A DNA stretch of 64,000 nt from Paramoeba atlantica (GCA_977017575.1 CDRNVI010000011.1:248001-312000), one strand, 5' to 3'. Counted from the stretch's first letter, positions 14,575 through 36,557 are shown. A program made the numbers and translations. The notes: a model not told the origin generated them from the sequence alone.

Positions 14575-15428
14575 CCGTCACAAGCCTACTGTAAAGCACC
14601 CAAAACGGCTGGGAAATATCTGGCATTCTTTGTAAATCGGTAAAGACACTACTTTCCACTACGTCTTTTTTTGTATCTTTTTGAAACAGTGTTTCGGAAA
14701 ATCTAATTATATTTCGGAAAAGGCGAATTCTCCTTCACTTCACCCATGTCTTCAACATCCTCAGGATTGTGTACTTATTTTCCGATCAAGGGCTGTAGAA
14801 GTGTTGCTTCCTAATCACGGGCTGCTGAAGGAACCTTCTTGTACTCCGCATGGTCCAAGTATTATGCGGGACGTATCCGGACGATCAAAATGTGCTGTTT
14901 TCATGAATCCCAGCGCGACCCGAGTCGCATGAAACGAGGAAAGCTCGAACAAATAGACTAGACAAACACATTCTAGAGGCCATAGGTGTGCTGATGGGGG
15001 GGGGGTCAAGTGTGTTGGGGGGGACGGCTGGCCACCAAAATCCAAATCATTCCAGATTGCTCCGGACGGTCACTGGCAAGCCAGACCCTTCACAGACAGA
15101 TTTTGAAATTCCGAGGCCGACATCGTCTATCAGTTTCCACTTTTCCAAGGCGGCACCAACGTGATGTTGGTGTGTCTGTACCTTGTTGAAAAAATTACTT
15201 TTCACATAAGCAAATGTATCGGGTTTTCTGCGACGGGGGCCACTGTTTTGGGGAAAGGACATAAACTTTTTACGGTGACAAATACTAAACCGGGGGACGG
15301 AATAATATTAAGATGCGGTTTATTATTAAGTTGCGGTTTATTATTAAGTTAGACAAGTTATTATTAAGCTAGACAGGTTATTATTAAGCTGGACAAGTTA
15401 TTATTAAGTTGTCAAGTTATTATTAAGT

Positions 15429-17718
15429 TTGTGTTTTTCGATGGGAGAAGGAGATTTTTTCGCCGAAAGTTTGACCCTTCATAGATTGGCTCAGGCAGTG
15501 TGTGACCCAACCTACGTTCAGGAAAACGATGAGATTATGTCCCTTGAGGATGATGAAGGGGTAGAAATGCTTGATGACTCGTCGGACGTAATCGGTAGCG
15601 GAAGCGATGGAGAAAGTGAAAGTGCTAGCGAGAGCGAAAGTGAAAGCAATTGTGAAAGCGAATGTGAAAGTGTGAATTCAAGCGAAGAAGAAATAGGATA
15701 TAATGTTGAAAGTGCGAGCGAAAGTAAAATTAAGGGTAATTCAACTTCGGATGATGAAGATAACGGAGCGGAGCTGACTGTTGGAGGGAAAGACAAGAAC
15801 GAGCGCAAAAAACAACATTGCGTAGTATATACGGGGCGTCATATAGACCAGGGTGTGCGCGGTCGAGTGGAATCCACGGCTAGACAAAAGCGTGTAATAT
15901 ATGAGGTGGCGGAGTGGCAAGAACTCAAAGTTTGAAGCACATGGTGCTCAGACGGCGAGTTCAAACCCACTCATCGCAATATTCCTGGCGGCCTCACTCT
16001 AAGAGGCTGGGCTGAGAACCGACTAGGCCCAGTACTCGGAGGACCGTCCCGGACCCTCCCCTCAGGGAACCAGCTCCCTTACCCGGCTTACACCTCTTGG
16101 GTAAGCCGTGTTGACGTACAATTCGTCGACGCAGCGTGTTGGCAACAGCACGTTGGTGCCGCCTTGGACAAGCGGAAACTGGTAGAGAACGTCGGCCTCG
16201 GAACTTCCAAATCTGTCTGTGAAGGGTCTGGCTTGCCAGCGACCGTCTGGAGCAACCCGGAATGATTTGGATTTGGATGATTTGGACGGCTAGACAAAAG
16301 CGTGTAATATATCAGAAGTGGATTTCCTGGTCGCAACAAGATCGAGATGCTTATGGACCACTCCGCAAGTTAAACTCTTGGATCGACAAGCGATTCCCTA
16401 AGAAATGTGTCCACATTTTTAACAAAAAGCAAGTTATGGCATACTCTAATATTCCTAGGCATAGTCAAAAGCGTAAAAGGCATGTAAAGGGGCATAAACT
16501 GAAATGGTTAAAACAACAATTGCATTATTTTATTCTTGGATCTCGAGAGAACGATGCTTTGATAACAACCGAGATGGTGCGCCAAGAGGCATTTCGCATG
16601 CTGAAAAAGGAAAACCGCAAATCATCAGAGCAGAACAAAGCACGGGGGATTACAAGAGTAAGCGAACGTAGGATAGGGAGATTCCTCCACTCTTACAAAT
16701 GGTCTATAAGATTAGTAAAGAGATCAACTCAGCTATCAAGTGAAGAGATAAAGCAAAGAATTCATTCCTTTCATACGTTTGCCTATCGTTGTCTTAAAAC
16801 AAAAAAGTTTCGTTCCGTTCTGAATTTTGATGAAATTCCCATATCATTTCGCGGGTCCATGAAATCTTTAAAAACAATTGCACAGCGAGGAGAAGAAGAT
16901 GTACGAGGGCGTTGCAATCCGAATGATATGAAGCGATGCGCAACGCTTATCTGCGGTGCTGGCGTGAAACTGGACAAAAATGGAAGTCCAACGAGTCATT
17001 TCTTTCTAAAACCTTTTATCGTGTGGAAAGGAGCTGGAAAAGGATCTAGTCACGAGATATTTGATGCAAGGACGGCTCGAGCTTTTACTCCGAAAGGTGT
17101 CGTGAACAAAGATTTTTTTCTCCAAGACTTTATTTCCTTTCTCAAACGTGAACTGGATATAAATGACGCAGGCCACACTTTAATTTATCTAGACTCCTGC
17201 CGATCTCACATAACAAGTGACGTTCTCGATGCGTTTGCCACTGTGGCTAACTGCTAATGTGCCATATTACCCCCTGCAACAACATCCTGGATCCAATGGA
17301 TTGATGTATTTTATGCTTCGTGGACAAACGCGAGCAAGTAAACATTTGGCACAGAGAACAACATATCCGTCGGACCGCCCGCCAAAAGAGACAATGGATG
17401 CATAATGCCGTTGCCCGAGCGCACGAACAAGTTATAAACCTCGACAACGACTCTCTTGATGAATCAGGGACCCTTTCCTCTTCTATGAACGTTGTTCAAC
17501 AATTCAAAAGCTTGGGGTATATCGACCCTTGTGATGCATCGTGGTCGCATGTGAAATGTTTAGAAGGATATGTCTTTGTTCCACCAAGCGATGACGATGA
17601 GAGAGACGAAGCTAAGAGAATCGAAGATGCCTTTAAGCGTGGGAAAAGCGTCCAGGCACGAAAATCATTCCAAGGACGGCTCGATAAATGGTGTAACCCA
17701 CGACGCTCCACCGAATAA
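15429..17718 (+). pseudogene. pogo transposase pseudogene with acidic N-terminus
   Basis: ORFs 15429-15935 and 16262-17257 join in frame (TARQKRVIY) once the SINE and one TSD are removed; in-frame TAA at 17255; later frameshift. Confidence 0.85.
15903..16285 (+). mobile_element. full-length tRNA-headed SINE-B
   Basis: A box TGGCGGAGTGG (15907), B box GTTCAAACC (15959), (GATTTG)n tail, 27-bp TSD ACGGCTAGACAAAAGCGTGTAATATAT (15876-15902 / 16286-16312). Confidence 0.9.
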
Positions 17719-19732
17719 AGGTAAAGAAAAGAAAGATTTATGAAGTTTATGAAGTCGGGTAAAGATTCAGATAAAAAAAATATTCTTAAAGATTGCATAC
17801 ATAAAAAAACAATTTGTTAATTTTATTACAAACTTAATAATAACCCGCTGACAAGTTAATATTAAGTTTCACAACGTTGACAGGTTATTATTAAGTTTGA
17901 CAGGTTATTATTAAGTTGTCAAGTTATTATTAAGTTTCAACAACTTAATATTATTCCGTCCCCCGGTTTACAAGCGATCGGGCACTTACGCAAGTTTTTT
18001 GAGAAAAACTTGGTTCGGCGAGATAAAATACCCCATGATGAAGGGATGGCCAATTGACCCGATGGGCGCGAATCGGATCAATATTGAAAAATTACCTTGT
18101 TAAAAATTTACACAACACCATTTTACCCTGCGCCCCCTTCTTCGCTGCCTCTTTTCCCCCCTCCTGCGCTGACTTCGTCGCCCCCCCCTTTCGCCCCCCG
18201 CCCTCCCCGCCCACTGCTCTGCGCGTCCTTCGCCGCCCCGCTCACCACCAGCGCCGCCCTCCTGCCCCCCCTCCTGCGCGTCCTTCGCCGCCCCGCTTAC
18301 CCACCACCAGCGCCGCCCTCCTGGCCCCCCTCCTGCGCTCCTGCCCCCCCTTCACCCCCTGCTTCGCCGCCCCTTTCATCCCCCTTCGCCGCCCTTTTCG
18401 CCGCCCCTTCACCGCCCCCTTCGCCCTCTTCGCCCCCCCTTCTCCGTCCCCTTCTCCGCCCCCTTCTCCGCCCTTCGCCGACCCCCTCGTCGCCCCTTCG
18501 CCGCCCCCTTCGCCGACTTCTCTCACCGCCACTCTCTCCGTCGCGCTCCCCGCCGCGCTCTCCCGCCGCTGCACTCTCCCCCGCCCTTTCGATCTCCACC
18601 GCGCCTCTTTTCGCCGCCCTTCGGCGCCCCTATCTCCCATGTTGTGGAGCTACCCGGTGTCAGCACAACAAGACGTCAAGAAACTAGGGCAGTTTCCACG
18701 CAACAATTTAAGGCAGAGTAGTGGATTAACTTGTTAATCCACGCTGGGGGGTAGCGAACCCCTCCTGCCCTGGAGCTGTTAATTATTGACTTCCTTTCAT
18801 AGGAGGATAAGTCGGGTGTGTGCCCTCTATGGTTGAGATTACTCCTGTGTTGGTACAGATGCTTCGAGCATCAGCATCCGCACAGCGGACCTAGGCTGGA
18901 ACTAGGGGGCCATATCTCTTCGGAGACAAATGGCCCTGTGTATTACTACTACTACTACTCCAAACGTGATGTTACCAACACGTTGCGCTGACGAATAGTA
19001 CTTCAACACGGCTTACCAACCAGCCAACACTGGGAAAATTTCCCAGTTAATGGATTTACAATTTTCTTCTGAACATACACCCTTCCTCCTAACCGCGCGG
19101 GGCTAATTTACAGAAAATTTTTCAAAAACAAACAGACTTTGTATTTTATGGATCCTAATCATTCGATCCCTATGACACCTCAGTACTTAGCTTTCGTTTG
19201 CTGTGTAAGGCACTTACCGATGTGAGCACGACAGCAAACGGGTTAGTTCTCATCTGTATTCTGAATCATGCAGCGATACAAAGAAATTATTGGAACTAAA
19301 TTGCACCTCCTTAAAGTCGTGTTAATCCCAGAAATTAACACGACTTTTGTTGACATAACTTAATTTCCCCCCTGCATTCGATCTCGAACTTAACAATACC
19401 TGCGTTGTTTTCGTAGTCTTATGACGACCTTCTTTGAGTTTTTCACCTGTTGAAACTTTGGTATCTTCCTCTCCTGTATCTTTTAACCTCTTCTTTTGCG
19501 GATGATTCGAACGCGCTTTTACTAGTATATTTGTATTAGGTCGAGCTGTTCGTGGAGGCTCTGGGGCAGAATCTTTGTTTTTCTGCTTTTTCGTATTTAA
19601 CACAGTTGAGGTCATGTTGCGCGTCGAATTCCTAGATCGTTTGACGGTATGTTGATCACTGCTTTCCTGATTATCGTTTTTCTTATACGTATTATCGTTT
19701 AATATCTTATCGTTAATATCTTATCGTTTTTC

Positions 19733-20573
19733 TTATATGTATTTTTGACAGTTTCCGCGTATTTTGGATTTTGCAGACAGCGGTTCCTTGAACGTTTTTT
19801 CAGTTGGCTGAGATTGTTCTGTATTGGTACCTTGTCGCTTACGCTGAGTTTTAGCTAAGCGGGGACCCAGGTTTTGACCCGTCTTTCTTTTCCCTTCCAG
19901 AAACAGCACGTCTCCCAAATACTTAACAGAAAGCTCGTGTTTTGCTAGCTCAAAAGCCTCTTTCGCCATGGAGTCGGCTGTGTCGTTGTATGAATTTTCG
20001 TTATGGGATTTTACTTTTACGCAATAAAAATTTCTGTTGGTCTTAATGTAAAAGTAAGCATCTTTTAGCAATTCCATTGTCTTACCGTCTTCGAAGGATT
20101 GGTAACCTATGAGCCTATACATGTATCTGTGAACAATTTCGTTAAAGAATTCCCATATATTCAAAATTTGTGTGTAAGATGACGTCTCCCTCGTACGATT
20201 GTGCACCTTTTATGGCCTCAATTGCTGCATATGATTCGATCGATTGAATTGAGCTGGAATATTCTAGAGGAGGTTTCATCCCCTTAAACTGTGTGCGCTC
20301 GCTTCCTCTCAGAATTACGATGCCGCATCCCTGGAGTTGTTGATTCTTTTTGTAAATAAGCCACCCGTCAGTGTAAATATGTGTTTCATTCTCTCTGATG
20401 GGAAACGCTGTTTTTCCTTCTTCGATGAATTGTAATTCCTTGTATCCGACCTGACGAGCAATTGACATATGATAGCATTTGCCCCAAGACGGCTGCCGCA
20501 AAGGGACTGAAATCGCCGATCCACGAGTTTGCGCTTTGTCTGGCACCTCGTTTTCGTGAGAATCAGCAGTCAT
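19733..20573 (-). pseudogene. LINE RNase H region, degenerate
   Basis: ETHIYTDG, ESYAAIEAI, YCVKVKSHNENSYNDTAD across frameshifts; a second RNase H relic lies on + at ~21640-22130. Confidence 0.75.
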
Positions 20574-22829
20574 TGAATGGATGAAGGGAACTAAGCATAA
20601 CGTTTCAATGATTTCCGTAAATGAAAATATTAGAAATTTACACCACTTTTACTCAACCTTTTTGGTCAAAAAAATGGTCAGTTTTTTTTCGGACAACTCT
20701 TTTCGTCATTTTTCAAAACGGCACTATAAGTGATGCGGCACTATAAGTTCACCGCGTCACTAAGAGCGGGGGGCCAAAGTATCTTTTGTCGAGTTTACCC
20801 TCGAGTCCTAACAAACTAAGGTAAAACTATGAATAATTCGGGTACTTCTCTACCTCTTTGATTAATCAACAGAGTGGCTGCCACTTCGTCGATGAATAAG
20901 CGAATAGGAAATTAAAAATACGCAATCCTGCGGAAGTGGCAGACATAGGTCCTCAGTGCACGACCCGCGCGCTGGAGCGCGCGAGTCGCCAAAAAATATA
21001 ATTATGTCCCAGGGCTACGCTCACAGTTGGGCCTTGCTCGCAAACGGGGACTTTTACCTCCAGAAGTCCAATCCAATCCAAAAAGGCCGATTTACATTGG
21101 CTGATAAAACTACTATTTTGTTTTTCGTGAAGACACCTTCCTCTTAGGTGAATCTTCCCTCTCATTATCCACCTTTTAGAGAAGCACTCTTGATTGTTCA
21201 TAACTTTTATCTTTTTCAACATTATGAGCATCACTCTCTTCGGACGATTTTACTCCAGTACTAGTGGGAAGTAATGTGCCCCTGTTGTTGACCGGTTCTC
21301 CCCCAGTGTTAGATATCTTGCGTTTGTTTTTGGCAACACGTTGAACATTAGCTTTTGGACGTAATATGCCCTTCTTTTGGGGAGAGTCTACAAGCTCCTC
21401 CGTATTCTTATTTAACGTTTTCTTCCTCCTAATTTATAGGGAAGGAACAGGCTTACCAGAGCAAGTGCTAACGCATCCGCTTTTTCATTGTGGGGATTAC
21501 CATTGTGTGATTTCACCTTACTCGCATAACTTTTTATATTCTTAGCTTGTAGGGAACGAATCTCAAAATCAAGGTCTTTTAATACCTTTTCATTTTGTAC
21601 TTTCTCATCCGGAACTAGACCGCCAACACAAGCTTCCCACTCAGCACCTGCAGTAGAAGCCTATGCGGCAATCGAGGCTCTTAATCAAGCGAATTATTAT
21701 GGCAACGACATCTTCCTACATACTGATTCTGAATACATATGGAATTTTTTCCACAACGTCATGCAAATATATCGTCTCATCGGGTTCTTAGCTTTTGAGG
21801 GAAACGAACTTCTTACACAGCTTCAGAAAACATATTCGAGCATTCGAGTTACTAAAAGGATTTTTTGTGTCAAAGTAAAAGCGCACAACGAAAATCCCTA
21901 CAATGACAGTGCGGATTCCCTGACAATTTAGTAGCACTTCGTCCTGCTAAATGTTTAAGATAGCGTTATAAAACACGAACTACAGAAGAAATTTCGTCGC
22001 AGGAACAAAAAAATAAGCACAACATTGTCCGGCCATCAAAGGACAATGCATCCTCGGGCAAGCGCTCAAGAAACGTACGACCGGAAGAAACGCAGAAAAA
22101 GCAAAAAGATTTACGCAGCGAGGGAAGAAAACCATGCACACTTCAAGACAAGACTGATAAAGCATTGAAGGAAAGATTTCCGCAAATAAAAAGGTCCCAT
22201 TCGTCAAGCGAAATCCATGATAACACCAATCATAAAGTTCTGAAATCAAAATTGGTAACTACACGCAAGTTGTCTACGAATGAAAAAGGTGGATCATCAT
22301 CAAAATGCACGGTGAAAGGGGAAAAGAAAAAAGGGGGAAAGAAGAAAGAAGTCCTACATAAAACGAGAGCTAATGAATCTGAAGAAAGCAGTGATAGGGT
22401 GCCTTAACAAAATATAATTGTATCTGGGCTCACTTATTGGAAAGTGTGGAAATGTTTCGTTGATGCTGTCGTGATTGCTACGGTTTAAAACCGGATATTT
22501 TAGCTGAGTACTAAAGTTCAATACTCACATACAATTGATGAGGAATTATGAAATTTTCAAAATGAGACGTTGTTTGAAAAGTTTCCGTAAAGAAATCGGG
22601 GCCAGAAGCGGAAAGAACTATACTATTTTTGATAAAACTGTAAAACTCTTAACTGAAGGAAACTTCAGTTACGGGTGCATCTATGTAAATATGAGCTTCT
22701 TTATCTTTAATAGGGAATGAGTCGCTACCTTCTTCCAAGAATTGTAAATCACATAAGTTTTCCTTTTCGACGCCACGCTTATAGAGACTTCCATTGTGAT
22801 GTTATAACGCGAGTATTATTCGGCAGTGG

Positions 22830-24080
22830 TCCTAGTGTTTGCTGCAAACTATAGCAGAGTGCGCCAGTGATCGCGATCTTGGGGGTATACTAAGGTCTCT
22901 TCCAGAGTTATCCCTAAGTCTCTAATGCATGCCTCAGCTGGTGACATAGTGCGTGGTGTTTCTCGGCATTTCCATTTTAGAAGGTGCTGAAAAGTCGGGG
23001 AATGTCAGAGGGTATGGCCAACAAGCTTTACGCGGCTCACGTGGTGCACGGTTGAGAATCGTGGCGTTCCAAAATACAGAGACTCCAGTGGGTAACAGTG
23101 CCCAAGTTCGTCCAGCTTCGCGCATTGACAAGCGAATCTCCGCATCATATTGATTTCAACCTCAATTGAGCGAACCATGTAATTGGGAATCGTTATAGCA
23201 GCTGCTCCAAATGTGAGTACGGGGTATACCAGGCAGTCAAATAATGGCAATTTTGTCGCCACGCTCAGTGGTGATTCCCAAATGCCCTTGAGTTTCCGAA
23301 ACCCTGCCCACGTTAGTCGGAGCCTATCTTTCACAGAAGAGGAATAGTTGGACGCATCTTGCATATTCCCTAAATAACGGTATTTGTCGACATATGGAAT
23401 CTTGCCGAATGAGTTACTACGTAGATCGCGCGTCCCACCAGGAATTTTTCCAAAAGCCAACCAAACAGTTTTATTCTGGCCAACGGCGATGTGTAAATTA
23501 GCTTGTTTCGCTTCGTGTGCGGTAGAGTCAATCATCTTTGACAGTTCACCCTTTGTGGGAGCCAGCAGGGCAATTTCATCAGCACAGTTAATAGCCCGCA
23601 ACCTCACCTCTTGGATTCCAGATTTATCTCTGGATGCTCGAGTCTTCGTTTCATTAAGCAACCGCTGAGCCCCTGCAGTCGATCGTTCTGATCGAAAACC
23701 AAATTGACTCCCGCGAAGCACTGATTCAATCGAAGGCCGAATGCGCTGCAATATCATCAGTTTGACTACGCTTTTGACAAGGCATATGGGGCGCCAATTG
23801 TTGATTTGAGTAAGATTACCCTTTTTCGGAATTGAAACTTGTAGCACGTTCTTCCAACAGCCGGGGGCAACACCAGTTTCGGAGACATTATTGATAAGAT
23901 CAGGGAGTGTGCGCCGTAATTTTCCGTGTTCCACCATCATAATAAGCACTTCGACGGGTATTTCATCAATTCCAAGGGCTTTGTTTCGTGCTAGCCTGGG
24001 GGCTCTAATCTGAAGCTCTTCTTCGGTAAACCATTCATCTCTTATTGGAATCAATGATTTCCTCGCCTCGTCAAATTCGA
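22830..24080 (-). pseudogene. RTE-like LINE RT fragment with internal deletion
   Basis: KALGIDEIP, IPKKGNLTQINNWRPICL, QFGFRSERST, then a jump to CADEIALL; QGD motif missing. Confidence 0.8.
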
Positions 24081-24224
24081 TGTCTCGGTTTCTCCGATCG
24101 TCGTTTCCTATGTTTGAAAAGAAATCGCAAACCACTTTAAAAGTGGTTATAAATTGGGACCCTATGGCCCCAATCCTCTTCGCCATCGGGATTCAAAGGG
24201 CGATTTCCAAGGTGGCAGCCAAGT

Positions 24225-25345
24225 TCACAGGCTATAGTGGGATAAAGTGGAATAAAAAATGGTGACTTGATGCATGATGTGGATCTTCAGCTCCGATTCC
24301 TAAATTTTAATTCTTATACCATATACTTGTGCAACGTAACGGCGCACATTGGAAATACATGGAATGAAGAGGCAGAGCCTAGCACTTTTAGCAGCGCGTA
24401 AAGTGGCTTGGCCTCCGATACCAAAAAGGAGAAAACCAACTGACAAATCGGAAAATGAGGAGAATTCACAGCCGTTATGGCCTTTAAAGGCCTTACTCAA
24501 AAGGATATCCCTTGTAAATGGGCCAGCGCGAGACATTCCTGCATCCAAGCGCGAAGCTGAGGCACGGAGTGTGCTTCGAGGTAAGGTTGCGAGAACTGGC
24601 GGTAATAGGAAACCCATCATAGCACATTTATAATGCATACTAAGGCACATTTATAATGCATATTAATACGGCACATTATAATGCATATAGCACATCGATG
24701 ATGCATATAGCACAAAACATTTCCACCAGGCGGACTAGCCGAAAAATACATTTAGCCAGGGACGCAAATGGGTTTCACCTTTGCTCCCGGTGAGGCCCCG
24801 GAGTTGCGAGAGGCCTCCATACCCCACAACTACCACCTTCCCCCCCTATTTAGCGGGGGTGGCGCGAGCGACCCCTGATAAATGGGGGGAAGGTGGTAGT
24901 TGTTTTGGGGAATATGAGAGACCGAACGCACGGAGGGGCCGGCCGGTCCAATAACCCCAGACCTTGTTTACCCGTCTGCGACATAAACCGGTGAATGCTG
25001 CAAAAAAAAATAAGTTGAGGTGTCCAAAAAAATCACTATTGTTATATGCATTATAAATGTGCTATATGCATTAGCAATGTGCAGCTTAATATGCATTATA
25101 AATGTGCGGGTGCCAAACCGTCCAAGTAAGGAAAGAATTGATGGAATCGCATCTTTGTAAACTTGGAGGGATTATCTGTAGGTTATGGGAAAAATATTGT
25201 TTTTTTGTACCGTATCACACACATATATTACATACTTAAGTATATAATAACGAACTTGGAGGTGATAGATGAAAGCTTTCAAGGTGACAGTGTTAAGTTT
25301 TTCAACCGACTTTAAGTCGGTCTTATTGGATTGGATTGGATTGGG
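24225..25345 (+). mobile_element. 5'-truncated LINE of the (ATTGG)n family, itself interrupted at ~24620-25115
   Basis: RNase H end (AHIGNTWNEEA) and C-terminus RGKVARTGGNRKP homologous to 41416-41706; ACCGAC/GTCGGT hairpin then (ATTGG)n. Confidence 0.75.
24620..25115. mobile_element. non-autonomous DNA element with ATAATGCATAT subterminal repeats and central palindrome
   Basis: Inverted arrays CACATTTATAATGCATA / TATGCATTATAAATGTG; core 24783-24878 recurs inverted at 27793-27888. Confidence 0.55.
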
Positions 25346-26149
25346 TTGCGCCTAAACGCGGCCAAATGTAAAGTGGCCACGAGGGAGCACAACCTCTTCT
25401 CTGAGTTTTCCGGAATCAGAATGATTCACTCCCCGGGGGGAGTTAAACTTCTGGGGGCTTTCATTTGGGAGTCGGAGGACAGGGAGGAAGAATGGGTCCT
25501 ATATAAGACCTCCAAAGTGATCTCCTTCCCTGAGAAATTGAAAGCTCTCAACAGGCAATGTGCTCTGCCTCTCCTAAGGCTCTTTTGGAGCCCACGATGG
25601 AACGAGCCGGGTAAGGGAGCTGGTTCCCTGAGGGGAGGGTCCGGGACGGTCCTCCGAGTACTGGGCCTATTCGGTTATCAGCCCAGCCTCTTAGAGTGAG
25701 GCCGCCTGGAATATTGCGATGGGCGGGCACAACCTGTGTGAGTTTCATCCTTTTTAACGATTCGTGCTCCATTTGTATAAATGTGGGTTTCATTTGGCCC
25801 GATTGGAAATCGTTGCCGCCCTTCTTCAATGCATTGTAGGGTTTCGTAGAACACCTTGTTTACCTCCTTTAGAAAAAGATTTCCATTGTTTTGAAGTTGT
25901 TTTAGTGTACGAGGTCCTGGGTTCAAGCTGGTGTTGAGGATTCTTGCGTATTGATGAAATAGTGTCAACATTCCTTCTTGGACGCAATATGAGTGTCACT
26001 TCTGGCGAGGATATGGGGTCAGAAGAAGAAGAAGGAGCCTTTGTCGTCTTCAACCTCTTTGCCGCTTGTGATTTTAACGGCCTTCGTTACGCCGAGAGAG
26101 CCAAGACATCAGCTTTGTCGCTATATTCGTTCCCATTATGAGATTTAAC

Positions 26150-26190
26150 GATAAAGATGCAATTTCTGTACCTTGTTGGTATGAGAAGCT
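26150..26190 (+). ncRNA. spliced-leader RNA fragment (exon 3' part plus first 12 nt of intron), not a full gene
   Basis: (TAAC)GATAAAGATGCAATTTCTGTACCTTGTTG|GTATGAGAAGCT resembles the kinetoplastid SL exon (...CAGTTTCTGTACTWTATTG) and the conserved intron start GTATGAGAAGCT. Confidence 0.85.
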
Positions 26191-26197
26191 AAAAAGG

Positions 26198-27011
26198 GGC
26201 GGAGGGGCAAGAATTCAAAGTTTGAAGCACATGGTGCTCAGACGGCGAGTTCAAACCCGCGGTGCGGGCGTAGTTGTTAGACGGTGGGCCTTACAACCTG
26301 CAGGTTGTGGGTTCGATTCCCGCTATCGACAAAACTCGCAACCTGGCGGCCTCACTACAAAGGGAAAGCGATCAGGAGTGCCTTCAAGGCCCACACCCAA
26401 ACCCGCCCCCCTGGAGGACCGACCCGGAACCGCCGAGCTGAACCAGGCCCCAGCGCAGCCGCTAAATTGGGAGATGCTTACGCAAAGGAGGCTTGAGACA
26501 CAGCCTACACGATGCAACGGGGTGGACGCCCGTCCTGGTAGCTACGGTTGGGTAGCCGTGCTCGGGCCGCAAGGCGTCGAGTGCCGTCTGGGAAGGGGGT
26601 AGCAACACGATGAAGGTCGGTGACCTGAGACTCTACCCTAACGGTTGGCGCTGCAGAGCCCTCCGTGTCTTCTTCTTCTTCTTCTTCTTCTTCTTCAAAC
26701 CCGCTCATCGCAATATTCCCGGCGGCCTCACTCTAAGAGGCTGGGCTGAGAACCAACTAGGCCAAGTACTCGGAGGATCGTCCCGGACCCCCCCCTCAGG
26801 GAACCAGCTCCCTTACCCGGCTTAAAACTCTTGGGTAAGCCGTGTTGACGTACAATTCGTCGACGCAGCGTGTTGGCAACAGCACGTTGGTTCCGCCTTG
26901 GACAAGCGGAAACTGGTAGAGGACGTCGGCCTCGGAACTTCCAAATCTGTCTGTGAAGGGCCTGGCTTGCCAGTGACCATCCGGAGCGATCCGGAATGAT
27001 TTGGATTTGGG
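26198..27011 (+). mobile_element. SINE-B copy containing nested SINE-A
   Basis: Head 26198-26260, resumes at 26694; 15-bp TSD ATTATGAGATTTAAC (26135-26149 / 27012-27026). Confidence 0.9.
26261..26693 (+). mobile_element. tRNA-headed SINE-A
   Basis: tRNA(Val)-like head with B box GGTTCGATTCC (26310), (TTC)n tail, TSD TTCAAACCCGC (26250-26260 / 26694-26704). Confidence 0.9.
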
Positions 27012-27026
27012 ATTATGAGATTTAAC

Positions 27027-27470
27027 TTTGCACACATACAAATTAACATTCTGAGATTTTAGTTTCCGCACCTGATGACCTATATCTTGTACAATGTTTC
27101 TGTTGACGCTGCCGTCATACCCTATTACCCGTCTCCGAATGCGAACATGATGAAAGAAGTGCCACGCATAGAACGAATCTGTGTGTACTACGATATCTTT
27201 TGCTCCGCCCGGTATTCTTTTAAGCGCCTCTCGGAAAGATTCAGCCTCAGCTTGCTCGGCACTATCAACATCTAGTGTTAAGGAAAAACATTTATCGGTT
27301 GTCCACCGTTGAAGCACAACAATTCCAGCACCTGCTCTGATCTCGTTTGTCATCCGCAAGGCACGGACTGAACCATCAATATAGAAGTGAACCTCACCAT
27401 CTTTTACTGGAAGGATCAGAACTTTCTTCGACAAATTGGAAATCGTAAGGCGTATCTTGATTCAAGGCGT
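27027..27470 (-). pseudogene. LINE RNase H domain split by the SL-SINE insertion (continues at 26134 leftwards)
   Basis: FYIDGSV, EAESF, VHTDSFY, then CKVKSHN|GNEYSDKAD rejoined across the TSD. Confidence 0.85.
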
Positions 27471-27698
27471 AGGCATGTTTACTTTTCCATCTAGGAGAAG
27501 AGAGTCTTTCGTAATCCGGGAGCGGTTCGAGTGCTACGTGTATGACCCTCGCTTGGCCGAACGAACGGCGAAGAATACAATGTCAAAGCGCTTGGTCCGC
27601 CACCGGAAAGTAGACGGCGAAGTAATTGGACTAGTGACCAGCCTTCTGGAACGGCGATACAGCCCGCAACGGATTAGTGTCACCCTAAATAAGGAGCA

Positions 27699-27790
27699 AA
27701 GAGGAAGAAAGAGGAAGAAAGAGGAAGAAAGAGGAAGAAAGAGGAAGAAAGAGGAAGAAGGAGGAAGAAAGAGGAAGAAAGAGGAAGAGG
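27699..27790 (+). repeat. (GAGGAAGAAA)n purine microsatellite
   Basis: About 9 tandem 10-mers. Confidence 0.9.
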
Positions 27791-28067
27791 AGCAGGGGTC
27801 GCTCGCGCGACCCCCGCTAAATAGGGGGGGAAGGTGGTAGTTGTGGGGTATGGAGGCCTCTCGCAACTCCGGGGCCTCACCGGGAGCACAATTGAGGTTA
27901 CCTATTTTTTATGTTAACTGTGTGGCAAAATTGTAAATTTTTGGAAGGTGTTGAAATTTTTTTTTAGGGGTCGATTTTTTTTTAGGGGTCGATTTTTTTT
28001 TAGGGGTTGAAATCTTTTTTAGGCCTTGAAATTTTTTTTAAGGGGTCGACTTTTTTTTAATCGGTTT

Positions 28068-28200
28068 ATGACAGATAAGGGTGCGGCTTATATGACAGAT
28101 AAGGGTGCATTATGACAGACAAGGGTGCTGTATGACAGATAAGGGTGCGAGTTTCTATGACAGATACGGGTGCCGCGTTTATGACAGATAAGGGTGCGAG
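28068..28200 (+). repeat. six copies of ATGACAGATAAGGGTGC with short variable spacers (likely transposon subterminal array)
   Basis: 17-bp unit, spacers under 10 nt; preceded by TTTTTTTAGGGGTCGA repeats. Confidence 0.75.
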
Positions 28201-28643
28201 TGGGTACCTTTACATCTTCACATAACTTTTTCCAGTGATCTCGATCCTGAGCGTATACGAGGGCTTGTTCTTCGGTAATGTCCAGATCGTGAAAGCAAGC
28301 TTCGCTTGGTGAGGGATTTCGTTTCCTATCGCTGCATTTCCACTGAATAAGATCTCGAAACGTGAATGAGTGCCTTAGAATGTGACCAGCAATTTTAGCC
28401 CGACTAACGCGATGTACGGTGGAGAAACGAGGAGTGCCGCAATAAAGTGACTCGATAGTGTAGCAGTGTCAAAACTCGTCCAGTTTAGCACAATTACAGC
28501 AAAATCTTCGCATCATATTGAGCTCAACTTCTGTTTGCCGAAGCATTATGTTGGATATGGAAAGCGAAGCGGCACCAAAGGCCATGATTGGATAAGCGAG
28601 GAAATCAAACAAACGCAGTTTTGTTGCTGCACTCAGTGACGAG

Positions 28644-30521
28644 GTGGAGTTGGCGGAGTGGCAAGAACTCAAAGTTTGAAGCACATGGTGCTCAGACGGC
28701 GAGTTCAAACCCGCTCATCGCAATATTCCCGGCGGCCTCACTCTAAGAGGCTGGGCTGATAACCAACTAGGCCCAGTACACACACACACAAACACACACA
28801 CACACACACACACACACAACACTGAAGGCATTACCCTTCAGTTGAGAAACTGTTAAAGCTTCACTAAATATATGCTCCTAAAGCTAGAACTAATAGAATT
28901 TGATACCCACACCATCGTGCGCCCTATTGGTAGATATATTTTTCCATTACTCTCGTTTTGAGTACACCCCTGAGTTTACAGGTTGGATGTTCGGAAATGT
29001 TTCTTTTCGCTTTGTTCAAATTCTGCGTTAGCAAGCGAAGACGCGGTGTCTAGTAACTTACCTTTTCTCTTACGCCGCATCCGACGCTCCTCACGGGTTG
29101 GGTTCGTGGTTTTCTTTTCTAATGTTTTAAGGCACGCTATCCACACATATTCGGAGTGGGCCGATTCATTTCCTCGGTTCAGGTTTTTTCTTCGTTTAGA
29201 AATAGGTTCCGAACTAACGAGCTTTTTACTTAAGGTATCCGCTTCTTCATTCCATTTATTCCCACAATGGCCTCGGACCGTAATAAAGGTGATGGTTCTC
29301 CCCTGACAATGCGCTGATCGAATAAAACTATCCAGAAAACTAAGCAGATCGGAATTCGAGACTTCAAAACCAACCAGTCGATCTTTCCTTCGGCGCATAT
29401 TTACAAAATTCCACACATAATACGAATCTGTGTGTACAACAACATTTTCAACTTCTTTTAGTTTACTCAAACCAAATAGGGCAGCGTGAATTTCGGCTCT
29501 TTCAGGAGATTTGGTTTCCAGGTAGGATAGGGAGGACGAAAAACTTTCATGCTTCTCTGCGTTTACTATTACACATCCAACTGCTACCTTTACCCTTGTG
29601 TCCGTATCATCGGAGATAGAAGCATCCACGTACGCATGCATTTCCTCCGGTTTTACAGGAAAAGGGGTTTCCCCTTCTTCGATAAATTGTAATTTATTAC
29701 ACACTGTTTCTTTTAAAGCGTTTTTGTATGCTAGTTTCCATTTAGGACTTTTGTAGCCAATATAAGACTCTGAGGGCTCGAGTCTCTCTGAGAGGTTTTC
29801 AATTAATTTGGCCCAGTGTGCGCTATCAGAGGCATATACAAGCATTTCTTCCATCTCAATCCCAAGGTCTTGTGCGCATGCTTCGGAAGGCGATGGAAAT
29901 CTCGCCTTTTCCCGGGAGCCCCATCCTACTAAAGAGCGGTAGATCTCAGAGTGCCTAATTTGGTGACCCACAAGGCGCGCCCGATTAATACGATGTATTG
30001 TATTGAAATGTAGCGTGTTGCGGTACAGAGATTCAATAGGATAACAATGCCCATTCTCATCAACTCCTACGGCGTCACACACGATGCGCCTCATGTTGTT
30101 TACTTGTACTTCAACGTTTCTCACCTGCGATGCCGATATCACCATGGATGACGTACCGTAGTTTAGTATGGGATAGACAAGGGTGTCAAAAATTCGAAGC
30201 TTAGCCTTTACGCGAAGAGGCGAGATCCAAATACCTCGTAGTTTGCTAAGACACGCCCACGCCAAACTCGCCCAGTACTCGGAGGATCGTCCCGGACCCT
30301 CCCCTCAAGGAACCAGCTCCCTTACCCGGCTTAAAACTCTTGGGTAAGCCGTGTTGACGTACAGTTCGTCGACGCAGCGTGTTGGCAACAGCACGTTGTT
30401 GCCGCCTTGGAAAAGCGGAAACTGGTAGAGGACGTCGGCCTCGGAACTTCCAAATCTGTCTGTGAAGGGTCTGGCTTGCCAGTGACCATCCGGAGCGATC
30501 CGGAATGATTTGGATTTGGAT
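28644..30521 (+). mobile_element. SINE-B split by a LINE (halves 28644-28779 and 30270-30521)
   Basis: Own TSD AGTGACGAG (28635-28643 / 30522-30530) inside an older LINE RT relic (LDSSL|SAATKLRLFD). Confidence 0.85.
28780..30269 (-). mobile_element. 5'-truncated LINE of the (GT)n-tail family (RT C-terminus plus RNase H; ORF 28976-30265)
   Basis: TSD GCCCAGTAC (28771-28779 / 30270-30278); HAYVDAS, ERAEIHAA, VHTDSYY, RGHCGNKWNEEAD; 3' hairpin ACTGAAGG/CCTTCAGT then (GT)n. Confidence 0.9.
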
Positions 30522-30826
30522 AGTGACGAGTCCAAAATGCTCTTGAGCTTCCGAAATGCGGCCCGTGTGAGCCTTAAGCGGGCTTTTACTGGCGAAGAAA
30601 CGCCTGAATCCTGAATGTTTCCCAGATAGCGGTAAGAGTCAACAAGAGGAATTTTAAAGAGCGCGATGAAGAATACGATCCACCACGAGAACGAATAGAT
30701 ACGGGGCTAAAACATCTCCTTGAAGAATACCCGTATGGATTGAAAACGATGCCGTGTCTCCAAAAGGTGTTCAAACGATCCCTCGCAGTCCACTGTGGAT
30801 CGTTGTAGGTCGTTGTAATGAACGTC

Positions 30827-30949
30827 TCTGTCTGTGAAGGGTCTGGCTTGCCAATGACCGTCCGGAGCAATCCGGAATGATTTGGTTTTTTTTGGAGACT
30901 CTACCCTAACGCCTAGCCCTCCGTGTCTTCTTCTCCTCCTCTTCTTCTT
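30827..30949 (+). mobile_element. SINE-B 3' end fused through a T-run to a SINE-A-type 3' end
   Basis: ...CCGGAATGATTTGG-T8-GGAGACTCTACCCTAAC...CCGTGTC(TTC)n. Confidence 0.75.
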
Positions 30950-32211
30950 AAGGGAGTCGATAAAAAAATTCAACTGAGGACGAGAGGCCCGATTTTTTAG
31001 TCTCAAAACGAAACTCAGTTTTTTATCCCCCTTTTTGTCGAGGGGCAAGGGCCATTTTGCGGGGGTTTTAACATTGTTGTTGGTAGCGGGGTCTTCCTCT
31101 GTCGCAGAAAACCGAAAAAACCAACCAGGAGAAAAATGCAATAAATACACTTCCAAAGACCGATAAAGAAATGTTACCAAACGAACAAAAGAGATCCAGA
31201 TCTACAGGAGAAGCTCCAAAGAAACTGCGAAAGAGATCACAGAAACAGAAACTGCCAGCTTCAAAACTATCACCAGAATTTTCAACCCCCAAGAAGATGC
31301 AAACGAAACGAAAAATGCCAACTCAAGAGATCCAGGAGTTGGAATTATCTAAGGCTTCTGTAAAATATGAAGGAGAAAACAGTGAGTAACCCCCCCAGCC
31401 TCCCCCCACCCCATCTCCCCCCCCCGCCAGCATATTGTCCGATTTTATTTCTTTTCTTTTCTGCAAGATGCATTTCGTTTTTTATGTGTTTGATGTTGGT
31501 TTGGTTGAAAACTAATTTAGTATACCGTGAAGCTGGTGTACCGCTCGTCTCGCAATTTCAGGTAAGTTGTCTCAAACTAGCTAGGTAGTAACAGTAAAAC
31601 TAGCCACGCCCAGCTAGGAAGATAAAAAAAAAGCTAGGAAGATAATCACGGCTAATTAACCTAAGGCAACGTTGCGACGATAACCTAACCTAAGTGTGAA
31701 AATTAGTATGGCAAACAGTTTAACCTCCTTAAATGATCTATATCAGTGTTGTTGTTGTTCTTGAAAGAGTCCGTGCTAACCCCCTTGGTGCGACATCCGT
31801 CATTACGGATTGTGCCGATGATATCGGCTGTCGCATCGAGGGCTGTATCTCTGCTCCAACGAGCGCATGAACATCAAATTGTCGCAGCGACGACGACTTT
31901 CTGTACCTTGTTCATTTTATTATTAAATAAGACTTTTCATGGCAGCAGGGGGGAGCCCCCCCATACGTGGTTTGTCCCCCCAAACCACAGACGTGGTTTG
32001 TCCGCAAGCTCGGTGTATTCAGGCTCATGGTGGTACAGAAGTACCGCCTTCCCGATCGCATCAAGTTTAGGCAGTTCCTCTGCTCGGCCTAACGGATTAA
32101 ATTTTGCCACACTTTGGGTTGCAGGTGAGGAGGTAAATTTTGGTTCTTTCTCGTCCATCCGCTTTCTTAGTTCATACGTAGTTCATATGGGCAAAACCCC
32201 TCTTGTTGACT

Positions 32212-32812
32212 AAATCCAATACAAATCATTCCGGATTGCTCCAGACGGTCGCTGGCAAGCCAGACCCTTCACAGACAGATTTGGAAGTTCAGAGGCCGAC
32301 GTCCTCTACCAGTTTGCGCTTGCCCAAGGCGGAACCAACGTTCTATTGCCAACACGCTGCGTCGACGAACTCGAAGTGGCAAGAACTCGAAGTTTGAAGC
32401 ACATGGTGCTCAGATGGCGAGTTCAAACCCGCTCATCGCATTTTTCCTGGCGGCTTCACTCTCAGAGGCTGCGCTGAGAACATTCTGGGCCCAGTACTCC
32501 GAGGACCGTCCCGGACCCTCCGCTAAGGGAAACAGCTCCCTTACCCGGCTTACACCTCTTGGGTAAGCCGTGTTGATGTTCATTTGGTCGACGCATCGTG
32601 TTGTTAACAGCACGTTGGTGCCGCCTTGGAAAAGCGGAAACTGGCAGAGGACGTCGGCCTCGGAACTTCCAAATCTGTCTGTGAAGGGTCTGGCTTGCCA
32701 GTGACCGTCCGGAGCAATCCGGAATGATTTGGTTTTTTTTTTGGGGACTCCACCCTAGCGGCTAGCTCTGGAGAGCTATCCGTGTCTTCTTCTTCTTCTT
32801 CTTCTTCTTCTT
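32212..32812. mobile_element. head-to-head SINE-B pair: - strand 3' part (32212-32369) and + strand copy (32375-32732) with SINE-A-type tail
   Basis: Direct alignment to the 15903-16285 consensus; a further internal fragment lies at 32957-33102 (+) and another at 25605-25727 (-). Confidence 0.8.
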
Positions 32813-33457
32813 AAGGGGGTGGATAAAAAAATTCAAATGATGGCGAGAGGCCCGATTTTTTTTGTCGCAAAACGAAACTCAGTTTTACATGCCCCTTTTT
32901 GTCGAGGGGCAAGGGCCCTTTTTCGGGGGGGGGGGGTGTAAAATTGAAGAAGAATGCCCGGCGTCTTCGCTCTAAGAGGCTGGGCTGATAACTGACTAGG
33001 TCAAGTACTCGGAGGACCGTCCCGGACCTTCCTCTCGGGGAACCAGCTCCCTTACCGGGCTCACACTTCTTGGGTGAGCCGTGTTGACGTACAATTGGTC
33101 GAGGCATAAACCCAAGAAGAAGAAGAGAAGAATAGAAACCCAACCAACCACAAACCATCACTGGGATAATAAATTAATATGTCCCAGTTGAAAGCTTCAC
33201 AAATTTCTCCTACCCATAAAACACTTTGGCGGTCTCCACAAAACTAACATATTCACCAGAAGCTTTTCAAAAACATCTTGCACCAACTTCCATGTATCCT
33301 AATAAAAAGGTGGATGACGTTCCAGTACTTAGTCAAAGAAATTTTGACTTGAAATTGACTTTTCATTTTCAGCACAAACGGTTTGCCTAATAAAATATTT
33401 TCCACGAGAAACAACAGCATATCACCTTATCACACTACCCTTCACCTTTTCAGAACA

Positions 33458-33881
33458 CCGCGGTGCGGGCGTAGTTGTTAGACGGTGGGCCTTACAACCT
33501 GCAGGTTGTGGGTTCGATTCCCGCTATCGACAAAACTCGCAACCTGGCGGCCTCACTACAAAGGGAAAGCGATCAGGAGTGCCTTCAAGGCCCACACCCA
33601 AACCCGCCCCCCTGGAGGACCGACCCGGAACCGCCGAGCTGAACCAGGCTCCAGCGCAGCCGCTAAATTGCGAGATGCTTACGCAAAGGAGGCTTGAGAC
33701 ACAGCCTACACGATGCGACGGGGTGGACGCCCGTCCTGGTAGCTACGGTTGGGTAGCCGTGCTCGGGCCGCAAGGCGTCGAGTGCCGTCTGGGAAGGGGG
33801 TAGCAACACGATGAAGGTCGGTGACCTGAGACTCTACCCTAACGGTTGGCGCTGCAGAGCCCTCCGTGTCTTCTTCTTCTG
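33458..33881 (+). mobile_element. SINE-A, second copy
   Basis: About 3 substitutions versus 26261-26693; TSD TTCAGAACA (33449-33457 / 33882-33890). Confidence 0.9.
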
Positions 33882-34269
33882 TTCAGAACATGCGATCAAG
33901 GGGGGTATGAGGGGGGTATCATTTCTTTGGTGTTCGTAATACGTTGTTAGTGCGCGATCTATCGTCTTTCCCTTGACGCTTTTCTGTCTTTTTGACGCAG
34001 ATCTCTCTTTTAGCGAGTGTTTTTTGACGTGACCCCTTTGGGCCCAGACTTTCATAGCTTGGATCGTCATTCTACTGGTATAACTGATTACTCCTCCTTC
34101 TTTGCGGAGCTCTAAATTTAACCCGATCACTAATAACAATGTCAAAGACCGTTCGTTCCAGACCACACAAGTTTCGCAAGGTGCGCCATGGATTTGCCTG
34201 GTTTTTGCGAAGTCCTCTTTCGGTGTCTCCGCACTCTTCGGCAATACATTGTTCAATTGCTTTCCTGTG

Positions 34270-35860
34270 CTGTATTACTAAAGAGTTAAAACTCTTTGGA
34301 ATTGACTCCAGGAGAAAAGATCTCGCAGCCCTCGGATTGGACGATCATTTGAGGGATTCTCAAATTGATTCGCAGATTTCGAAGAATCTTCTTGGCTAGC
34401 TGATTTGATGCCCTTTGCAGCAGAGAGAATACATTCCGACAGCGTATCCCATGAGGCTTTCTCTTCGCAGCCCTCCAAATATTGATGAGTTTTTTGGGTA
34501 AACAATTTTCGTTGCGTTTCATCTCGAAGTTGGTACCAAGGGGTCGCGCTGGATGCTCCCGCCGAAGTGCTTCGCCACTTAATCTTAATCCGCGCAAACA
34601 CAGGGAGCTGGTTCGTGGGAATAGGGGCATTGAGAACCTTGTGCCGCCAGTTTGCGGAGGCAAATCTGGACGAAATTGTAACGTGATCTAGCTGTCGTTC
34701 CGTCTTGTCTATACTCACGTCCAGTTGCGGCTGCTGGGGCAAAGGCTGTGTGCAGATTTACGCGCAATCGAGCATAAAAGCCCACGAAATCTAGCAACCG
34801 CTGGGGGATCTAAACGTTTGTTCGTTACGAGCGTTAACGGCGAATTAAAATCCCCCATGACAAGAATAGGGCGACGCGGGTTACTGGCCTGTAATTGTTG
34901 ACGCAAAGAAGTCAGTTCTCCGTAAAACGCGGTCAAAACATCTTCAGAAGAATCTCTTATAGGAGCGTAGACATTAACCAGTGTTCCGACACCATCTTCC
35001 ATCGGAAAGTGCGCGGCCATGATTCGCTCGCTAACTTTCCAGACCTTATTAAGCGGTTCAATACTCACTATTGCCATACCGTTATACGAATCCGTGGGGG
35101 CAGCTGATAAAAGATACAGATAATAACAGGTTTCCGAGTCATAGACTTTTCGACGAATTATCTCCTTGCTTTCAACCTTGGAAAAACTTTATCGCGTCTC
35201 CTGCATACAAAGAATGTGCGCACCCTTCTTCGTCATCCAGTGCAGAACCTTATGCAGATGAGCTGATTTTCGGAGCGCAAACTCGTCGTCCCCATCCAAC
35301 CTAAGCGTAGTAGTGTTGAGTGTTCCTATATTCAGTGTTCCCTTCTCAGCGGAACCTCGAAGGTTCTCCGAATCGCGATGAGCGCGTTTGCCGGACAATG
35401 CCCACTTATATTTGCGACTTCTCCGCCTTTCCCGCGATCGATGGGTACCAGAGGAGCACAGACGTGCAGCGCAAAGAACTATACGCGGGTACCGAGGAGG
35501 AAAAGGTAAGGTGTCAGACGGTCGCTGCGCATAACGAACTCGCCATCGTACTCGCCATCGAACTCGCCATCTGAAACAGAAAAGGAACATCCGCACCCCT
35601 CTGCTCCACCATCCCCTCCCAGAGATTGAATTCCCGTGCGTAGGAATATCTCCACACCACAGCAATCCGTGAACCTCGGTACATCATCTTCGTTAATTGT
35701 GACAGAGAATTCGCACGGAGTTTTGCGAGTCCATTTCTATACCTTTTGGGCTGGAAAAGGGCCCCCCGACCAAGCGTGGACCGCAGAAGGAGGCTCATGA
35801 CTTCACTTGCTTCATGCGGGCCGGACGGGTCCGTCATTTTTTGAGAGTAACAAAAAACGT
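34270..35860 (-). pseudogene. 5' portion of a second LINE (N-terminal domain plus APE endonuclease), frameshifted
   Basis: MTDPSG..VVWRY..WEG, LNIGTLN, LCMQETR, VNVYAP, VMGDFNSPL, RQLDHV. Confidence 0.85.
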
Positions 35861-36180
35861 TGGCCCAGGAGCGCTCATGGATGGAGAAACGAAAGTTTTT
35901 ACGCCTTCGTTCCTCCGGGGGATGGGGTGGGATTAAACCACTTCTACCACGAATGATGTTCCACCTCCACCGAGGGGAAAAGGTTAGCGCGCTCGCTAAC
36001 GACATGTATGCCTCGGCGACGGGTTGCCACGCCGTCTTTGCCCCAGAACGCGGTTAACGACGCCGAGAACGAGGGTAAAACAGGATTAGGAAGGGACAAT
36101 TCCCTCTTGCTAGCTCGAAAATCCTTACTTCGGAAGGCTGGAGGTCGCCACGCCCCACCACCGGCAACGGTCCAATGCCG

Positions 36181-36557
36181 GAGGTGGCGGAGTGGCCAAG
36201 AATTCAAAGTTTGAAGCACATGGTGTTCAGACGGCGAGTTCAAACCCACTCATCGCAATATTCCCGGCGGCCTCACTCTAAGAGGCTGGGCTGATAACCG
36301 GCTAGGCCAAGTACTCGGAGGATCGTCCCGGACCCCCCCTCAGGGAACTAGCTCCCTTACCCGGCTTACACCTCTTGGGTAAGCCGTGTTGACGTACAAT
36401 TCGTCGACGCAGCGTGTTGGCAACAGCACGTTGGTGCCGCCTTGGACAAGCGGAAACTGGTAGAGAACGTCGGCCTCGGAACTTCCAAATCTGTCTGTAA
36501 AGGGTCTGGCTTGCCAGCGACCGTCTGGAGCAATCCGGAATGATTTGTATTGGATTT
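36181..36557 (+). mobile_element. full-length SINE-B
   Basis: Same GAGGTGGCGG start as 15903, A/B boxes and tail; no TSD found. Confidence 0.85.

Follow-up and report, generated by a model that had tools for sequence, protein, structure and literature searches.

The subject of this study is SINE-B, a family of short interspersed nuclear elements (SINEs) found in a 64,000-nt stretch of DNA filed under Paramoeba atlantica (G000:C11:248001–312000, from an assembly of 45.7 Mb in 248 contigs); this whole stretch is referred to below as the window. SINE-B is a real, recently active, non-coding family of a few hundred short elements, each built from a core with a consensus of 371 nt and a variable tail. 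Its members are probably non-autonomous retroposons in which a head of the leucine tRNA (tRNA-Leu) type would serve as an RNA polymerase III (Pol III) promoter and a 3′ end mimicking that of a long interspersed nuclear element (LINE) would allow mobilization by a LINE resident in the same genome. The part of the window that holds the family is a nest of transposable elements (TEs), in which SINE-B copies lie beside, inside and around other retroposons.

The abundance of SINE-B was gauged across the assembly. A 21-nt motif from the head has 300 matches and a 24-nt motif from the tail has 375 (each with at most 2 mismatches), against 0 for the reversed control of either motif; DNA search of the assembly gave 490 first-look candidates and more than 40 full-length copies of 95–98% identity, and the matches are dispersed over many contigs. 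JGI metagenome contigs scanned for the exact head and tail motifs yielded no match. Distinct loci are fewer than the match counts because the assembly holds allelic contig pairs (e.g., C11/C24, which carry the same SINE-B insertion with the same target-site duplication, TSD), and the counts are also inflated because some copies are passengers in tandem segmental arrays, recurring at fixed periods of 6485 bp (five times, C12:137283–163246) and of ~1995 bp (at least eight times, C21:765727–781449). The C12 hits, first taken for isolated tails, proved to be full SINE copies within a 6.5-kb tandem duplication. The mean divergence of 27 non-allelic copies from the consensus is 1.3%, which is a lower bound because these copies were the best-scoring ones; copies in the window reach 12%. 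Within the window, 12 blastn matches lie between 15038 and 36555 (the query was the copy at 15903–16285, and a search with the consensus agrees), in line with the roughly ten copies or fragments in 21 kb that an earlier note on this DNA had counted; they resolve into three full or near-full copies, two split copies and five fragments, with 88–98% identity to the consensus, and one related core at 18963–19017 (Table 1); the pieces of the family proper number 11.

The boundaries of the element bear the imprint of its mode of insertion. When 30 copies were aligned with their flanks, similarity was found to end just upstream of G[C/T]GGAGGTGGCGGAGTGG on one side and right after the tail on the other. 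TSDs of 8–27 bp, mostly 8–14 bp, surround most of 27 independent copies, whose flanks are unrelated to one another, and the TSDs of 9, 15 and 27 bp that the earlier note had read in the window are all there. Between the TSD and the head stand 0–9 extra bases, and in about a quarter of the copies the first 16–24 nt are repeated in one to three extra tandem copies (e.g., in L008, L011, L012, L018, L022, and L028, near 1440–1500 in each, and at L091:410–440). Slippage or re-copying at the 5′ end of the RNA is likely, because an 8-nt unit is repeated imperfectly, in direct orientation, within the head itself (GGAGGTGG CGGAGTGG). 5′-truncated copies occur, SINE and LINE copies are nested in one another, and one insertion (26150–27011) carries, inside a single TSD, ~48 nt of spliced-leader (SL) RNA—the exon and the first intron bases—at its 5′ end, as if the reverse transcriptase had switched templates to SL RNA. 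The TSDs, the truncations, the extra 5′ bases and the SL chimera are what target-primed reverse transcription by an endonuclease-type LINE usually leaves behind.

The head of SINE-B resembles a tRNA gene of the host. The A box (TGGCGGAGTGG, 15907–15917), the B box (AGTTCAAACCC, 15958–15968) and, at 15936–15948, the hairpin AGCAC-ATG-GTGCT, which is like a long variable arm, are all present in the copy at 15903–16285, as had been claimed. For comparison, host tRNA genes were gathered from tRNA clusters of kinetoplastid type. Aligned with the 80-nt host genes for tRNA-Leu(CAG) and tRNA-Leu(AAG), the initial 80 nt of the consensus need no gap and are identical at 39–40 of 80 positions; dinucleotide shuffles average 22 identities with a maximum of 35, and 0 of 5000 reach 39–40. 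In this register, the element begins at tRNA +1, its T8 falls on T8 of the tRNA, and G60-T-T-C stands at the same index as in the Leu genes. The A box agrees with the host Leu A box at 10 of 11 positions, the spacing of the two boxes equals that of host tRNA-Leu, and Leu(TAG) has exactly the same B-box decamer, GTTCAAACCC; the AGTTC variant of the B box, with its A at position 52, is also found in the host's two Thr tRNA genes. Gapped alignment gives z-scores of 8.3 for Leu(TAG), 7.0 for Leu(AAG), and 5.7 for Leu(CAG); the other class II tRNAs Ser(GGA) (7.1) and Ser(TGA) (4.8) also rank high, and class I tRNAs mostly score no more than about 3, with Gly(CCC) (5.1) and Val(CAC) (3.5) as outliers. 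A remnant of the cloverleaf is visible in an acceptor-like pairing, GCGGAGG/TCATCGC (6 of 7 pairs, two of them G-U), and in a T arm (GCGAG or GCGGG, TTCAAA, CCCGC). Descent of the head from a tRNA is likely, and its source was probably a class II tRNA of the Leu type, of which selection would have preserved little beyond the two boxes of the promoter, the distance between them and the helices at either end.

Downstream of the head, the body of SINE-B is GC-rich (58% G+C, against ~43% for the region) and folds more stably than its shuffles (z = −4.2). Its longest stop-free stretch, 109 aa, is unremarkable at this composition. Runs of four or more T are absent from the consensus, and the body lacks runs of four A as well. 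The consensus 3′ end reads TCCGGA-GCAA-TCCGGA-ATGA-(TTTGGA)n, i.e., a 6-bp stem closed by a GCAA loop, then a spacer of 4 nt and the repeats of the tail. The tail was described in the earlier note as (GATTTG)n, which is too simple: it consists of GGA and T units of varying length, arranged as (TTTGGA)n, (TTGGA)n, in some copies (GGATT)n, or a single run of 6–20 T. The same note's statement that intact copies lack TTTT holds for the body and for the best copies of the window but fails for the tails of the family at large, where runs of T4–20 are present in 19 of 27 independent copies and runs of T8–20 in 13 of them. Runs of eight or more T are absent from all 8 LINE tails compared (the longest is T5). 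Such a restriction of long T runs to the SINE tails fits the requirement of Pol III for a terminator, in what is a small sample.

LINE-2, the candidate partner of SINE-B, is itself present in the window (Table 1). Its copies elsewhere in the genome stop at the position equivalent to 41794–41796, and on C40 and C39 no gap, or hardly any, separates its body from its 3′ module; in the window, the two are parted by a pogo-like DNA transposon (~41791–44032). This DDE_1 element, which sits in the LINE-2 3′ untranslated region, was active recently, because its copies are 95–100% identical on at least eight contigs. Eight 3′ ends of the LINE-2 type were collected, three from the window (44030–44133, 25296–25346, and 21066–21111) and one each from C75, C63, C18, L016, and L028, and all have a common build: a hairpin with a loop such as GTAA or GCAA, a spacer, and (TTGGA)n or (TAGGA)n. 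Relatives of LINE-2 have open frames of 1483–2383 aa free of stops, and one of them, on C63, also has a (TTGGA)n end. The same LINE superfamily includes (TG)n- and (TTGG)n-tailed members, each with its tail behind a hairpin of its own, and the genome holds 2521 first-look LINE candidates; a search with the LINE protein returned unnamed relatives only.

The ends of SINE-B and LINE-2 are alike in build, with a 6-bp stem, a loop of 3–4 nt, a spacer of 3–4 nt and GGAT(2–3) repeats, and some SINE-B copies have pure (TTGGA)n tails identical to those of LINE-2. A covariance model built from five LINE-2 ends only, on which divergent LINE ends score 25–38 bits, matches one (TTGGA)n-tailed SINE-B end along its full 49 positions with 32.9 bits (E ~1e-6); every one of the six pairs is maintained through changes on either side of the stem. 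By blastn, SINE-B has no homology to LINE bodies or ends in the window and ~300 kb of further loci. A partnership with LINE-2 can reasonably be inferred from the common architecture and the tail repeats, not from homology.

Several candidates for a closer link between SINE-B and a LINE were discarded. The SINE-B hairpin occurs four times genome-wide in a non-SINE context, and the one occurrence that was read is a truncated SINE tail of ~35 nt. The recurrent string ATGTGATTTGGATTT (14 loci), considered as an element end, lies inside another repeat. The pattern of a LINE-2-type hairpin ahead of (TTTGGA)n matched a single allelic pair, which has the look of coding sequence. A repeat at L099–L105 (14 loci genome-wide) contains an internal GTGACCAATACGGAATGTGATTTGGATTTGGAGCC that is like the 3′ end of SINE-B with its hairpin partly deleted; it does not stand at an element end.

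Taken together, these features suggest the following life cycle. The 5′ 80 nt of SINE-B would be a decayed class II (Leu-type) tRNA with an internal Pol III promoter that looks to be in working order. Given A and B boxes with the same spacing as in host tRNA-Leu, each copy would be transcribable from about tRNA position +1, and transcription of SINE-B by Pol III is a reasonable inference. The GC-rich body offers no T4 stop, and the long T runs of the tail would end the Pol III transcript. The 3′ end of this RNA would imitate the ends of the resident endonuclease/reverse-transcriptase LINE superfamily, whose enzyme would cut one strand of the target and reverse-transcribe the RNA on site from the nick (target-primed reverse transcription), the process of which the insertions bear the hallmarks.

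A number of results weigh against this scheme. ARAGORN, run on the window and on better-preserved copies, makes no tRNA call for the head, the Rfam tRNA model RF00005 does not match it at the gathering score or at E ≤ 10 (over a 200-nt stretch), and no other small-RNA family of Rfam matches it. The D and anticodon stems have been lost, and the minimum-energy fold of the head is a long hairpin, not a cloverleaf. Outside the A and B boxes, the likeness to tRNA-Leu falls to 21–22 identities in 56 positions (p ~0.04–0.06). Because the detectors make no call and the similarity outside the boxes is marginal, descent from a tRNA is likely rather than proven. The earlier note's reading of the family is supported, its tRNA-derived head by the in-register likeness to host tRNA-Leu, with the caveat that tRNA-finding programs do not recognize it. 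The absence of T4 from 371 nt would arise by chance in roughly 50% of cases by our estimate, so it is not unusual. At the 3′ end, typical SINE-B copies score only 9.6–15.7 bits on the LINE-2 covariance model, and much of the 32.9-bit match is due to the common microsatellite. Finally, neither genome-wide pattern searches nor the ~370 kb of the 45.7 Mb that were read turned up a LINE whose hairpin is exactly that of SINE-B or whose tail is (TTTGGA)n.

The state of the head invites the alternative that SINE-B is a LINE-dependent retroposon with no promoter of its own, whose RNA would be excised from polycistronic Pol II transcripts and whose tRNA-like remnant would be an RNase P-type processing signal that fixes the 5′ end, or its boxes relics. 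Polycistronic Pol II transcription is established, and indeed pervasive, in kinetoplastids; only the acceptor-like pairing and the T arm are left of the cloverleaf, with the D and anticodon arms gone and the tRNA detectors silent; and the short retroposons so far known from kinetoplastids have no Pol III promoter (PMC2323293). We nevertheless consider this alternative unlikely. The two boxes are better preserved than any other part of the head and are spaced as in host tRNA-Leu, as expected if a promoter were under selection; the 0–9 variable bases before +1 fit start sites in the flank of the source copy better than a precise cut; and among the tails compared only those of the SINE have long T runs. 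Another possibility is that SINE-B is a deletion derivative of a LINE, as are RIME, NARTc, and SIDER, with tRNA boxes present by chance. This is the sole kind of short retroposon described so far in the group (PMC2323293), yet a LINE-deletion origin is largely refuted here and we regard it as highly improbable. A blastn comparison with the LINEs of the window and with ~300 kb of other loci returned only SINE copies and one 55-nt core outside a LINE, and the likeness of the head to tRNA-Leu exceeds that of all 5000 shuffles. A match of the head to the 3′ end of a LINE, which the earlier note had named as the outcome that would contradict a tRNA origin, was not seen in the window or in those ~300 kb of loci.

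If SINE-B is, as we favor, a promoter-bearing element that borrows a LINE enzyme, its partner could still be a resident lineage other than LINE-2, such as an unsampled (TTTGGA)n subfamily or the (TTGG)n or (TG)n lineages. The tails of the superfamily vary, with (TTGGA)n, (TAGGA)n behind a GCAA loop, (TG)n, and (TTGG)n all represented, and the ~370 kb read are a small part of a genome with so many LINE candidates. We think such a partner possible but rather doubtful: patterns with (TTTGGA)n behind a hairpin other than that of the SINE gave chance or internal matches only throughout the genome, and some SINE-B tails are pure (TTGGA)n, just as in LINE-2.

SINE-B has relatives in the same nest. 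The B box of the SINE-B copy at 26198–27011 is interrupted by SINE-A (26261–26693), a second family whose tRNA-like head differs from that of SINE-B and whose tail is (CTT)n. Both families hold CCTGGCGGCCTCACT at the same distance from the head, and they have three or four short collinear blocks in common (15–22 nt, E 4e-4 to 2e-3). A further relative of the SINE-B core, at 18963–19017, follows directly on the (TTGG)n tail of another LINE; it was considered as the 3′ end of that LINE and rejected, and it is a separate fragment, because in six related LINE copies the (TTGG)n terminus comes immediately ahead of it. With its truncated 5′ side and its (GTA)n end, this relative (18945–19017, minus strand) may represent a third SINE family or a chimeric retrocopy. 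On a bolder view, which we put forward as perhaps somewhat short of an even chance, these would be the first Pol III/tRNA-type SINEs described for Kinetoplastea and would form a modular superfamily—SINE-A, SINE-B, and the (GTA)n relative—with common core blocks and different heads and tails, each tail tuned to one hairpin-tailed LINE lineage, and with T runs that evolved as Pol III terminators.

The order of some insertions in the nest can be read from their nesting: SINE-B landed in a minus-strand LINE (27096–30803) and later itself received the LINE at 28780–30269, the 3′ end of which is a hairpin (CTGAAGG-GTAATG-CCTTCAG) followed by (TG)n. The SINE-B copy at 32372 adjoins an inverted fragment (32214–32371). 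An inverted duplication of 252 nt, 96% identical (32118–32369 against 36400–36651), covers the 3′ part of the SINE-B copy at 36179–36555 and its flank; it is a segmental rearrangement within the nest, not a separate insertion.

Table 1. SINE-B copies, their parts, and associated elements in the window (positions counted from its first nucleotide).
Feature	Position	Strand	Remarks
SINE-B, full copy	15903..16285	+	97.8% identity to consensus; 27-bp TSDs (ACGGCTAGACAAAAGCGTGTAATATAT) at 15876-15902 and 16286-16312
tRNA-like head of this copy	15903..15978	+	without the first 3 nt of the consensus head
3′ hairpin and tail of this copy	16246..16285	+	stem weakened by mutations, TCTGGA/CCCGGA
Chimeric insertion	26150..27011	+	SL RNA, SINE-B and nested SINE-A inside one 15-bp TSD (ATTATGAGATTTAAC; 26135-26149 and 27012-27026)
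SL RNA piece of the chimera, ~48 nt	26150-26197	+	
SINE-B head, split copy	26198-26260	+	
Nested SINE-A, (CTT)n tail	26261-26693	+	interrupts the SINE-B copy; TSD TTCAAACCCGC
Remainder of SINE-B, split copy	26694-27011	+	
SINE-B, 5′ part (consensus 3-136)	28644..28779	+	split by a later LINE; left 9-bp TSD (AGTGACGAG) at 28635-28643
SINE-B, 3′ part (consensus 128-371 and tail)	30270..30521	+	partner of 28644..28779; right TSD (AGTGACGAG) at 30522-30530
SINE-B, near-full (consensus 11-371)	32372..32747	+	92.5% identity; blastn match to 32736; tail GATTTGG(T)10GGGG
SINE-B, full copy	36179..36555	+	95.7% identity to consensus
SINE-B, 5′-truncated (consensus 244-371 and tail)	15038..15169	-	
SINE-B, internal fragment (consensus 67-189)	25605..25727	-	
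SINE-B, tail fragment (consensus 313-371 and T8 tail)	30827..30897	+	in a stretch duplicated from 32674-32929
SINE-B, older internal fragment (consensus 82-234)	32954..33106	+	88% identity
SINE-B core relative (consensus 201-255)	18963..19017	-	85% identity; ends in (GTA)n; not SINE-B proper
5′-truncated LINE with RNase H domain	28780..30269	-	inside SINE-B; 9-bp TSD GCCCAGTAC
LINE-2 body, endonuclease and reverse transcriptase	37295..41794	+	frameshifted after 39772; mapped body, not 5′ end
LINE-2 true 3′ end	44030..44133	+	ACCGAC-TTAC-GTCGGT-CTA-(TTGGA)4; 100-nt module
Second LINE-2-type 3′ end	25296..25346	+	ACCGACT-TTA-AGTCGGT-CTTA-(TTGGA)n
Third LINE-2-type 3′ end	21066..21111	-	GTAA-loop hairpin, CTTT, (TTGGA)n; downstream of reverse-transcriptase open reading frame 23005-24186

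The identity of the host bears on the meaning of the family. The SL-RNA piece at 26150–26197 carries ...TTTCTGTAC...TTG followed directly by GTATGAGAAGC, the hallmark of a kinetoplastid SL by comparison with that of trypanosomes; judged by this piece, the host uses a spliced leader of the kinetoplastid type. A kinesin encoded in the window has its best named relative in Perkinsela (39% identity), followed by diplonemid and euglenid sequences, and the host is a kinetoplastid, probably a deep-branching one. At L084:1487–1576 (G000:C109), on a contig that also bears SINE-B copies, there is a tRNA-Ser(GGA) of bacterial type whose CCA end is encoded; it could reflect contig chimerism or a transferred gene. 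A second, different set of tRNAs of nuclear type, in many copies, is found on contigs C143–C185 and C95–C135 (L031–L060 and L078–L090), although C185 nevertheless pairs with C67 for SINE and LINE matches, and AT-rich tRNAs of organelle type are present as well.

The short retroposons so far described in trypanosomatids are of another origin. RIME and NARTc derive by deletion from ingi and L1Tc, unlike the SINEs that stem from tRNA, 5S or 7SL RNA, and trypanosomatid retroposons have a common 79-bp signature at their 5′ ends (PMC2323293); the earlier note's statement that such elements come from LINEs rather than from tRNAs is correct for RIME and NARTc (PMC2323293). The TEs reported from Bodo saltans and trypanosomatids are ingi, CRE/SLACS, VIPER, and TATE (PMC4728078; PMC12278014), with four TE clades only in the latter account (PMC12278014); the TE lists for the group add only Merlin DNA transposons to these, and the Diplonema genome paper mentions SINEs by analogy only. 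The literature searched, as distinct from repeat databases, thus contains no tRNA-type SINE from kinetoplastids, and the earlier note's proviso that the family might already be catalogued for this lineage found no support there. SINE-B is a well-known kind of element, of which none is on record for the lineage in that literature.

A SINE with a small-RNA head would, if the reading holds, extend to Euglenozoa the classic partnership of SINE and LINE, in which a 3′ hairpin and a microsatellite are recognized. Hundreds of A/B-box units would moreover lie scattered through the genome of a lineage in which such boxes are known to drive neighboring small-RNA genes, and the family would provide young insertion markers for an uncultured, deep-branching kinetoplastid. 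The current view of how SINEs work is left unchanged.

Among known systems, the nearest parallels are the stringent-type pairs reportedly formed by UnaSINE1 and UnaL2 of the eel and by the Pol III SINE and the CR1-like LINE of the tortoise. Like SINE-B, these SINEs join a unique body to a tRNA-like head that holds an A and a B box, have a LINE-like 3′ stem-loop with short tandem repeats, and show variable TSDs and 5′ truncations. Unlike them, SINE-B has no extended identity to the 3′ end of a LINE, only hairpin geometry, spacer and microsatellite being common to the two; its tails often contain long T runs, and its host is a kinetoplastid with a spliced leader. RIME, NARTc, and SIDER are like SINE-B in being short, non-coding and dependent on a LINE enzyme, within the same broad host group; RIME and NARTc are deletion derivatives of ingi and L1Tc (PMC2323293), whereas SINE-B has no sequence in common with the LINEs that were read and has a head of small-RNA type. 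The blocks common to SINE-A and SINE-B are short (15–22 nt) and come from this one genome, but as in the CORE-SINE and V-SINE superfamilies, families with different heads and tails have internal blocks in common, here SINE-A, SINE-B, and the (GTA)n relative with its 55 nt of core.

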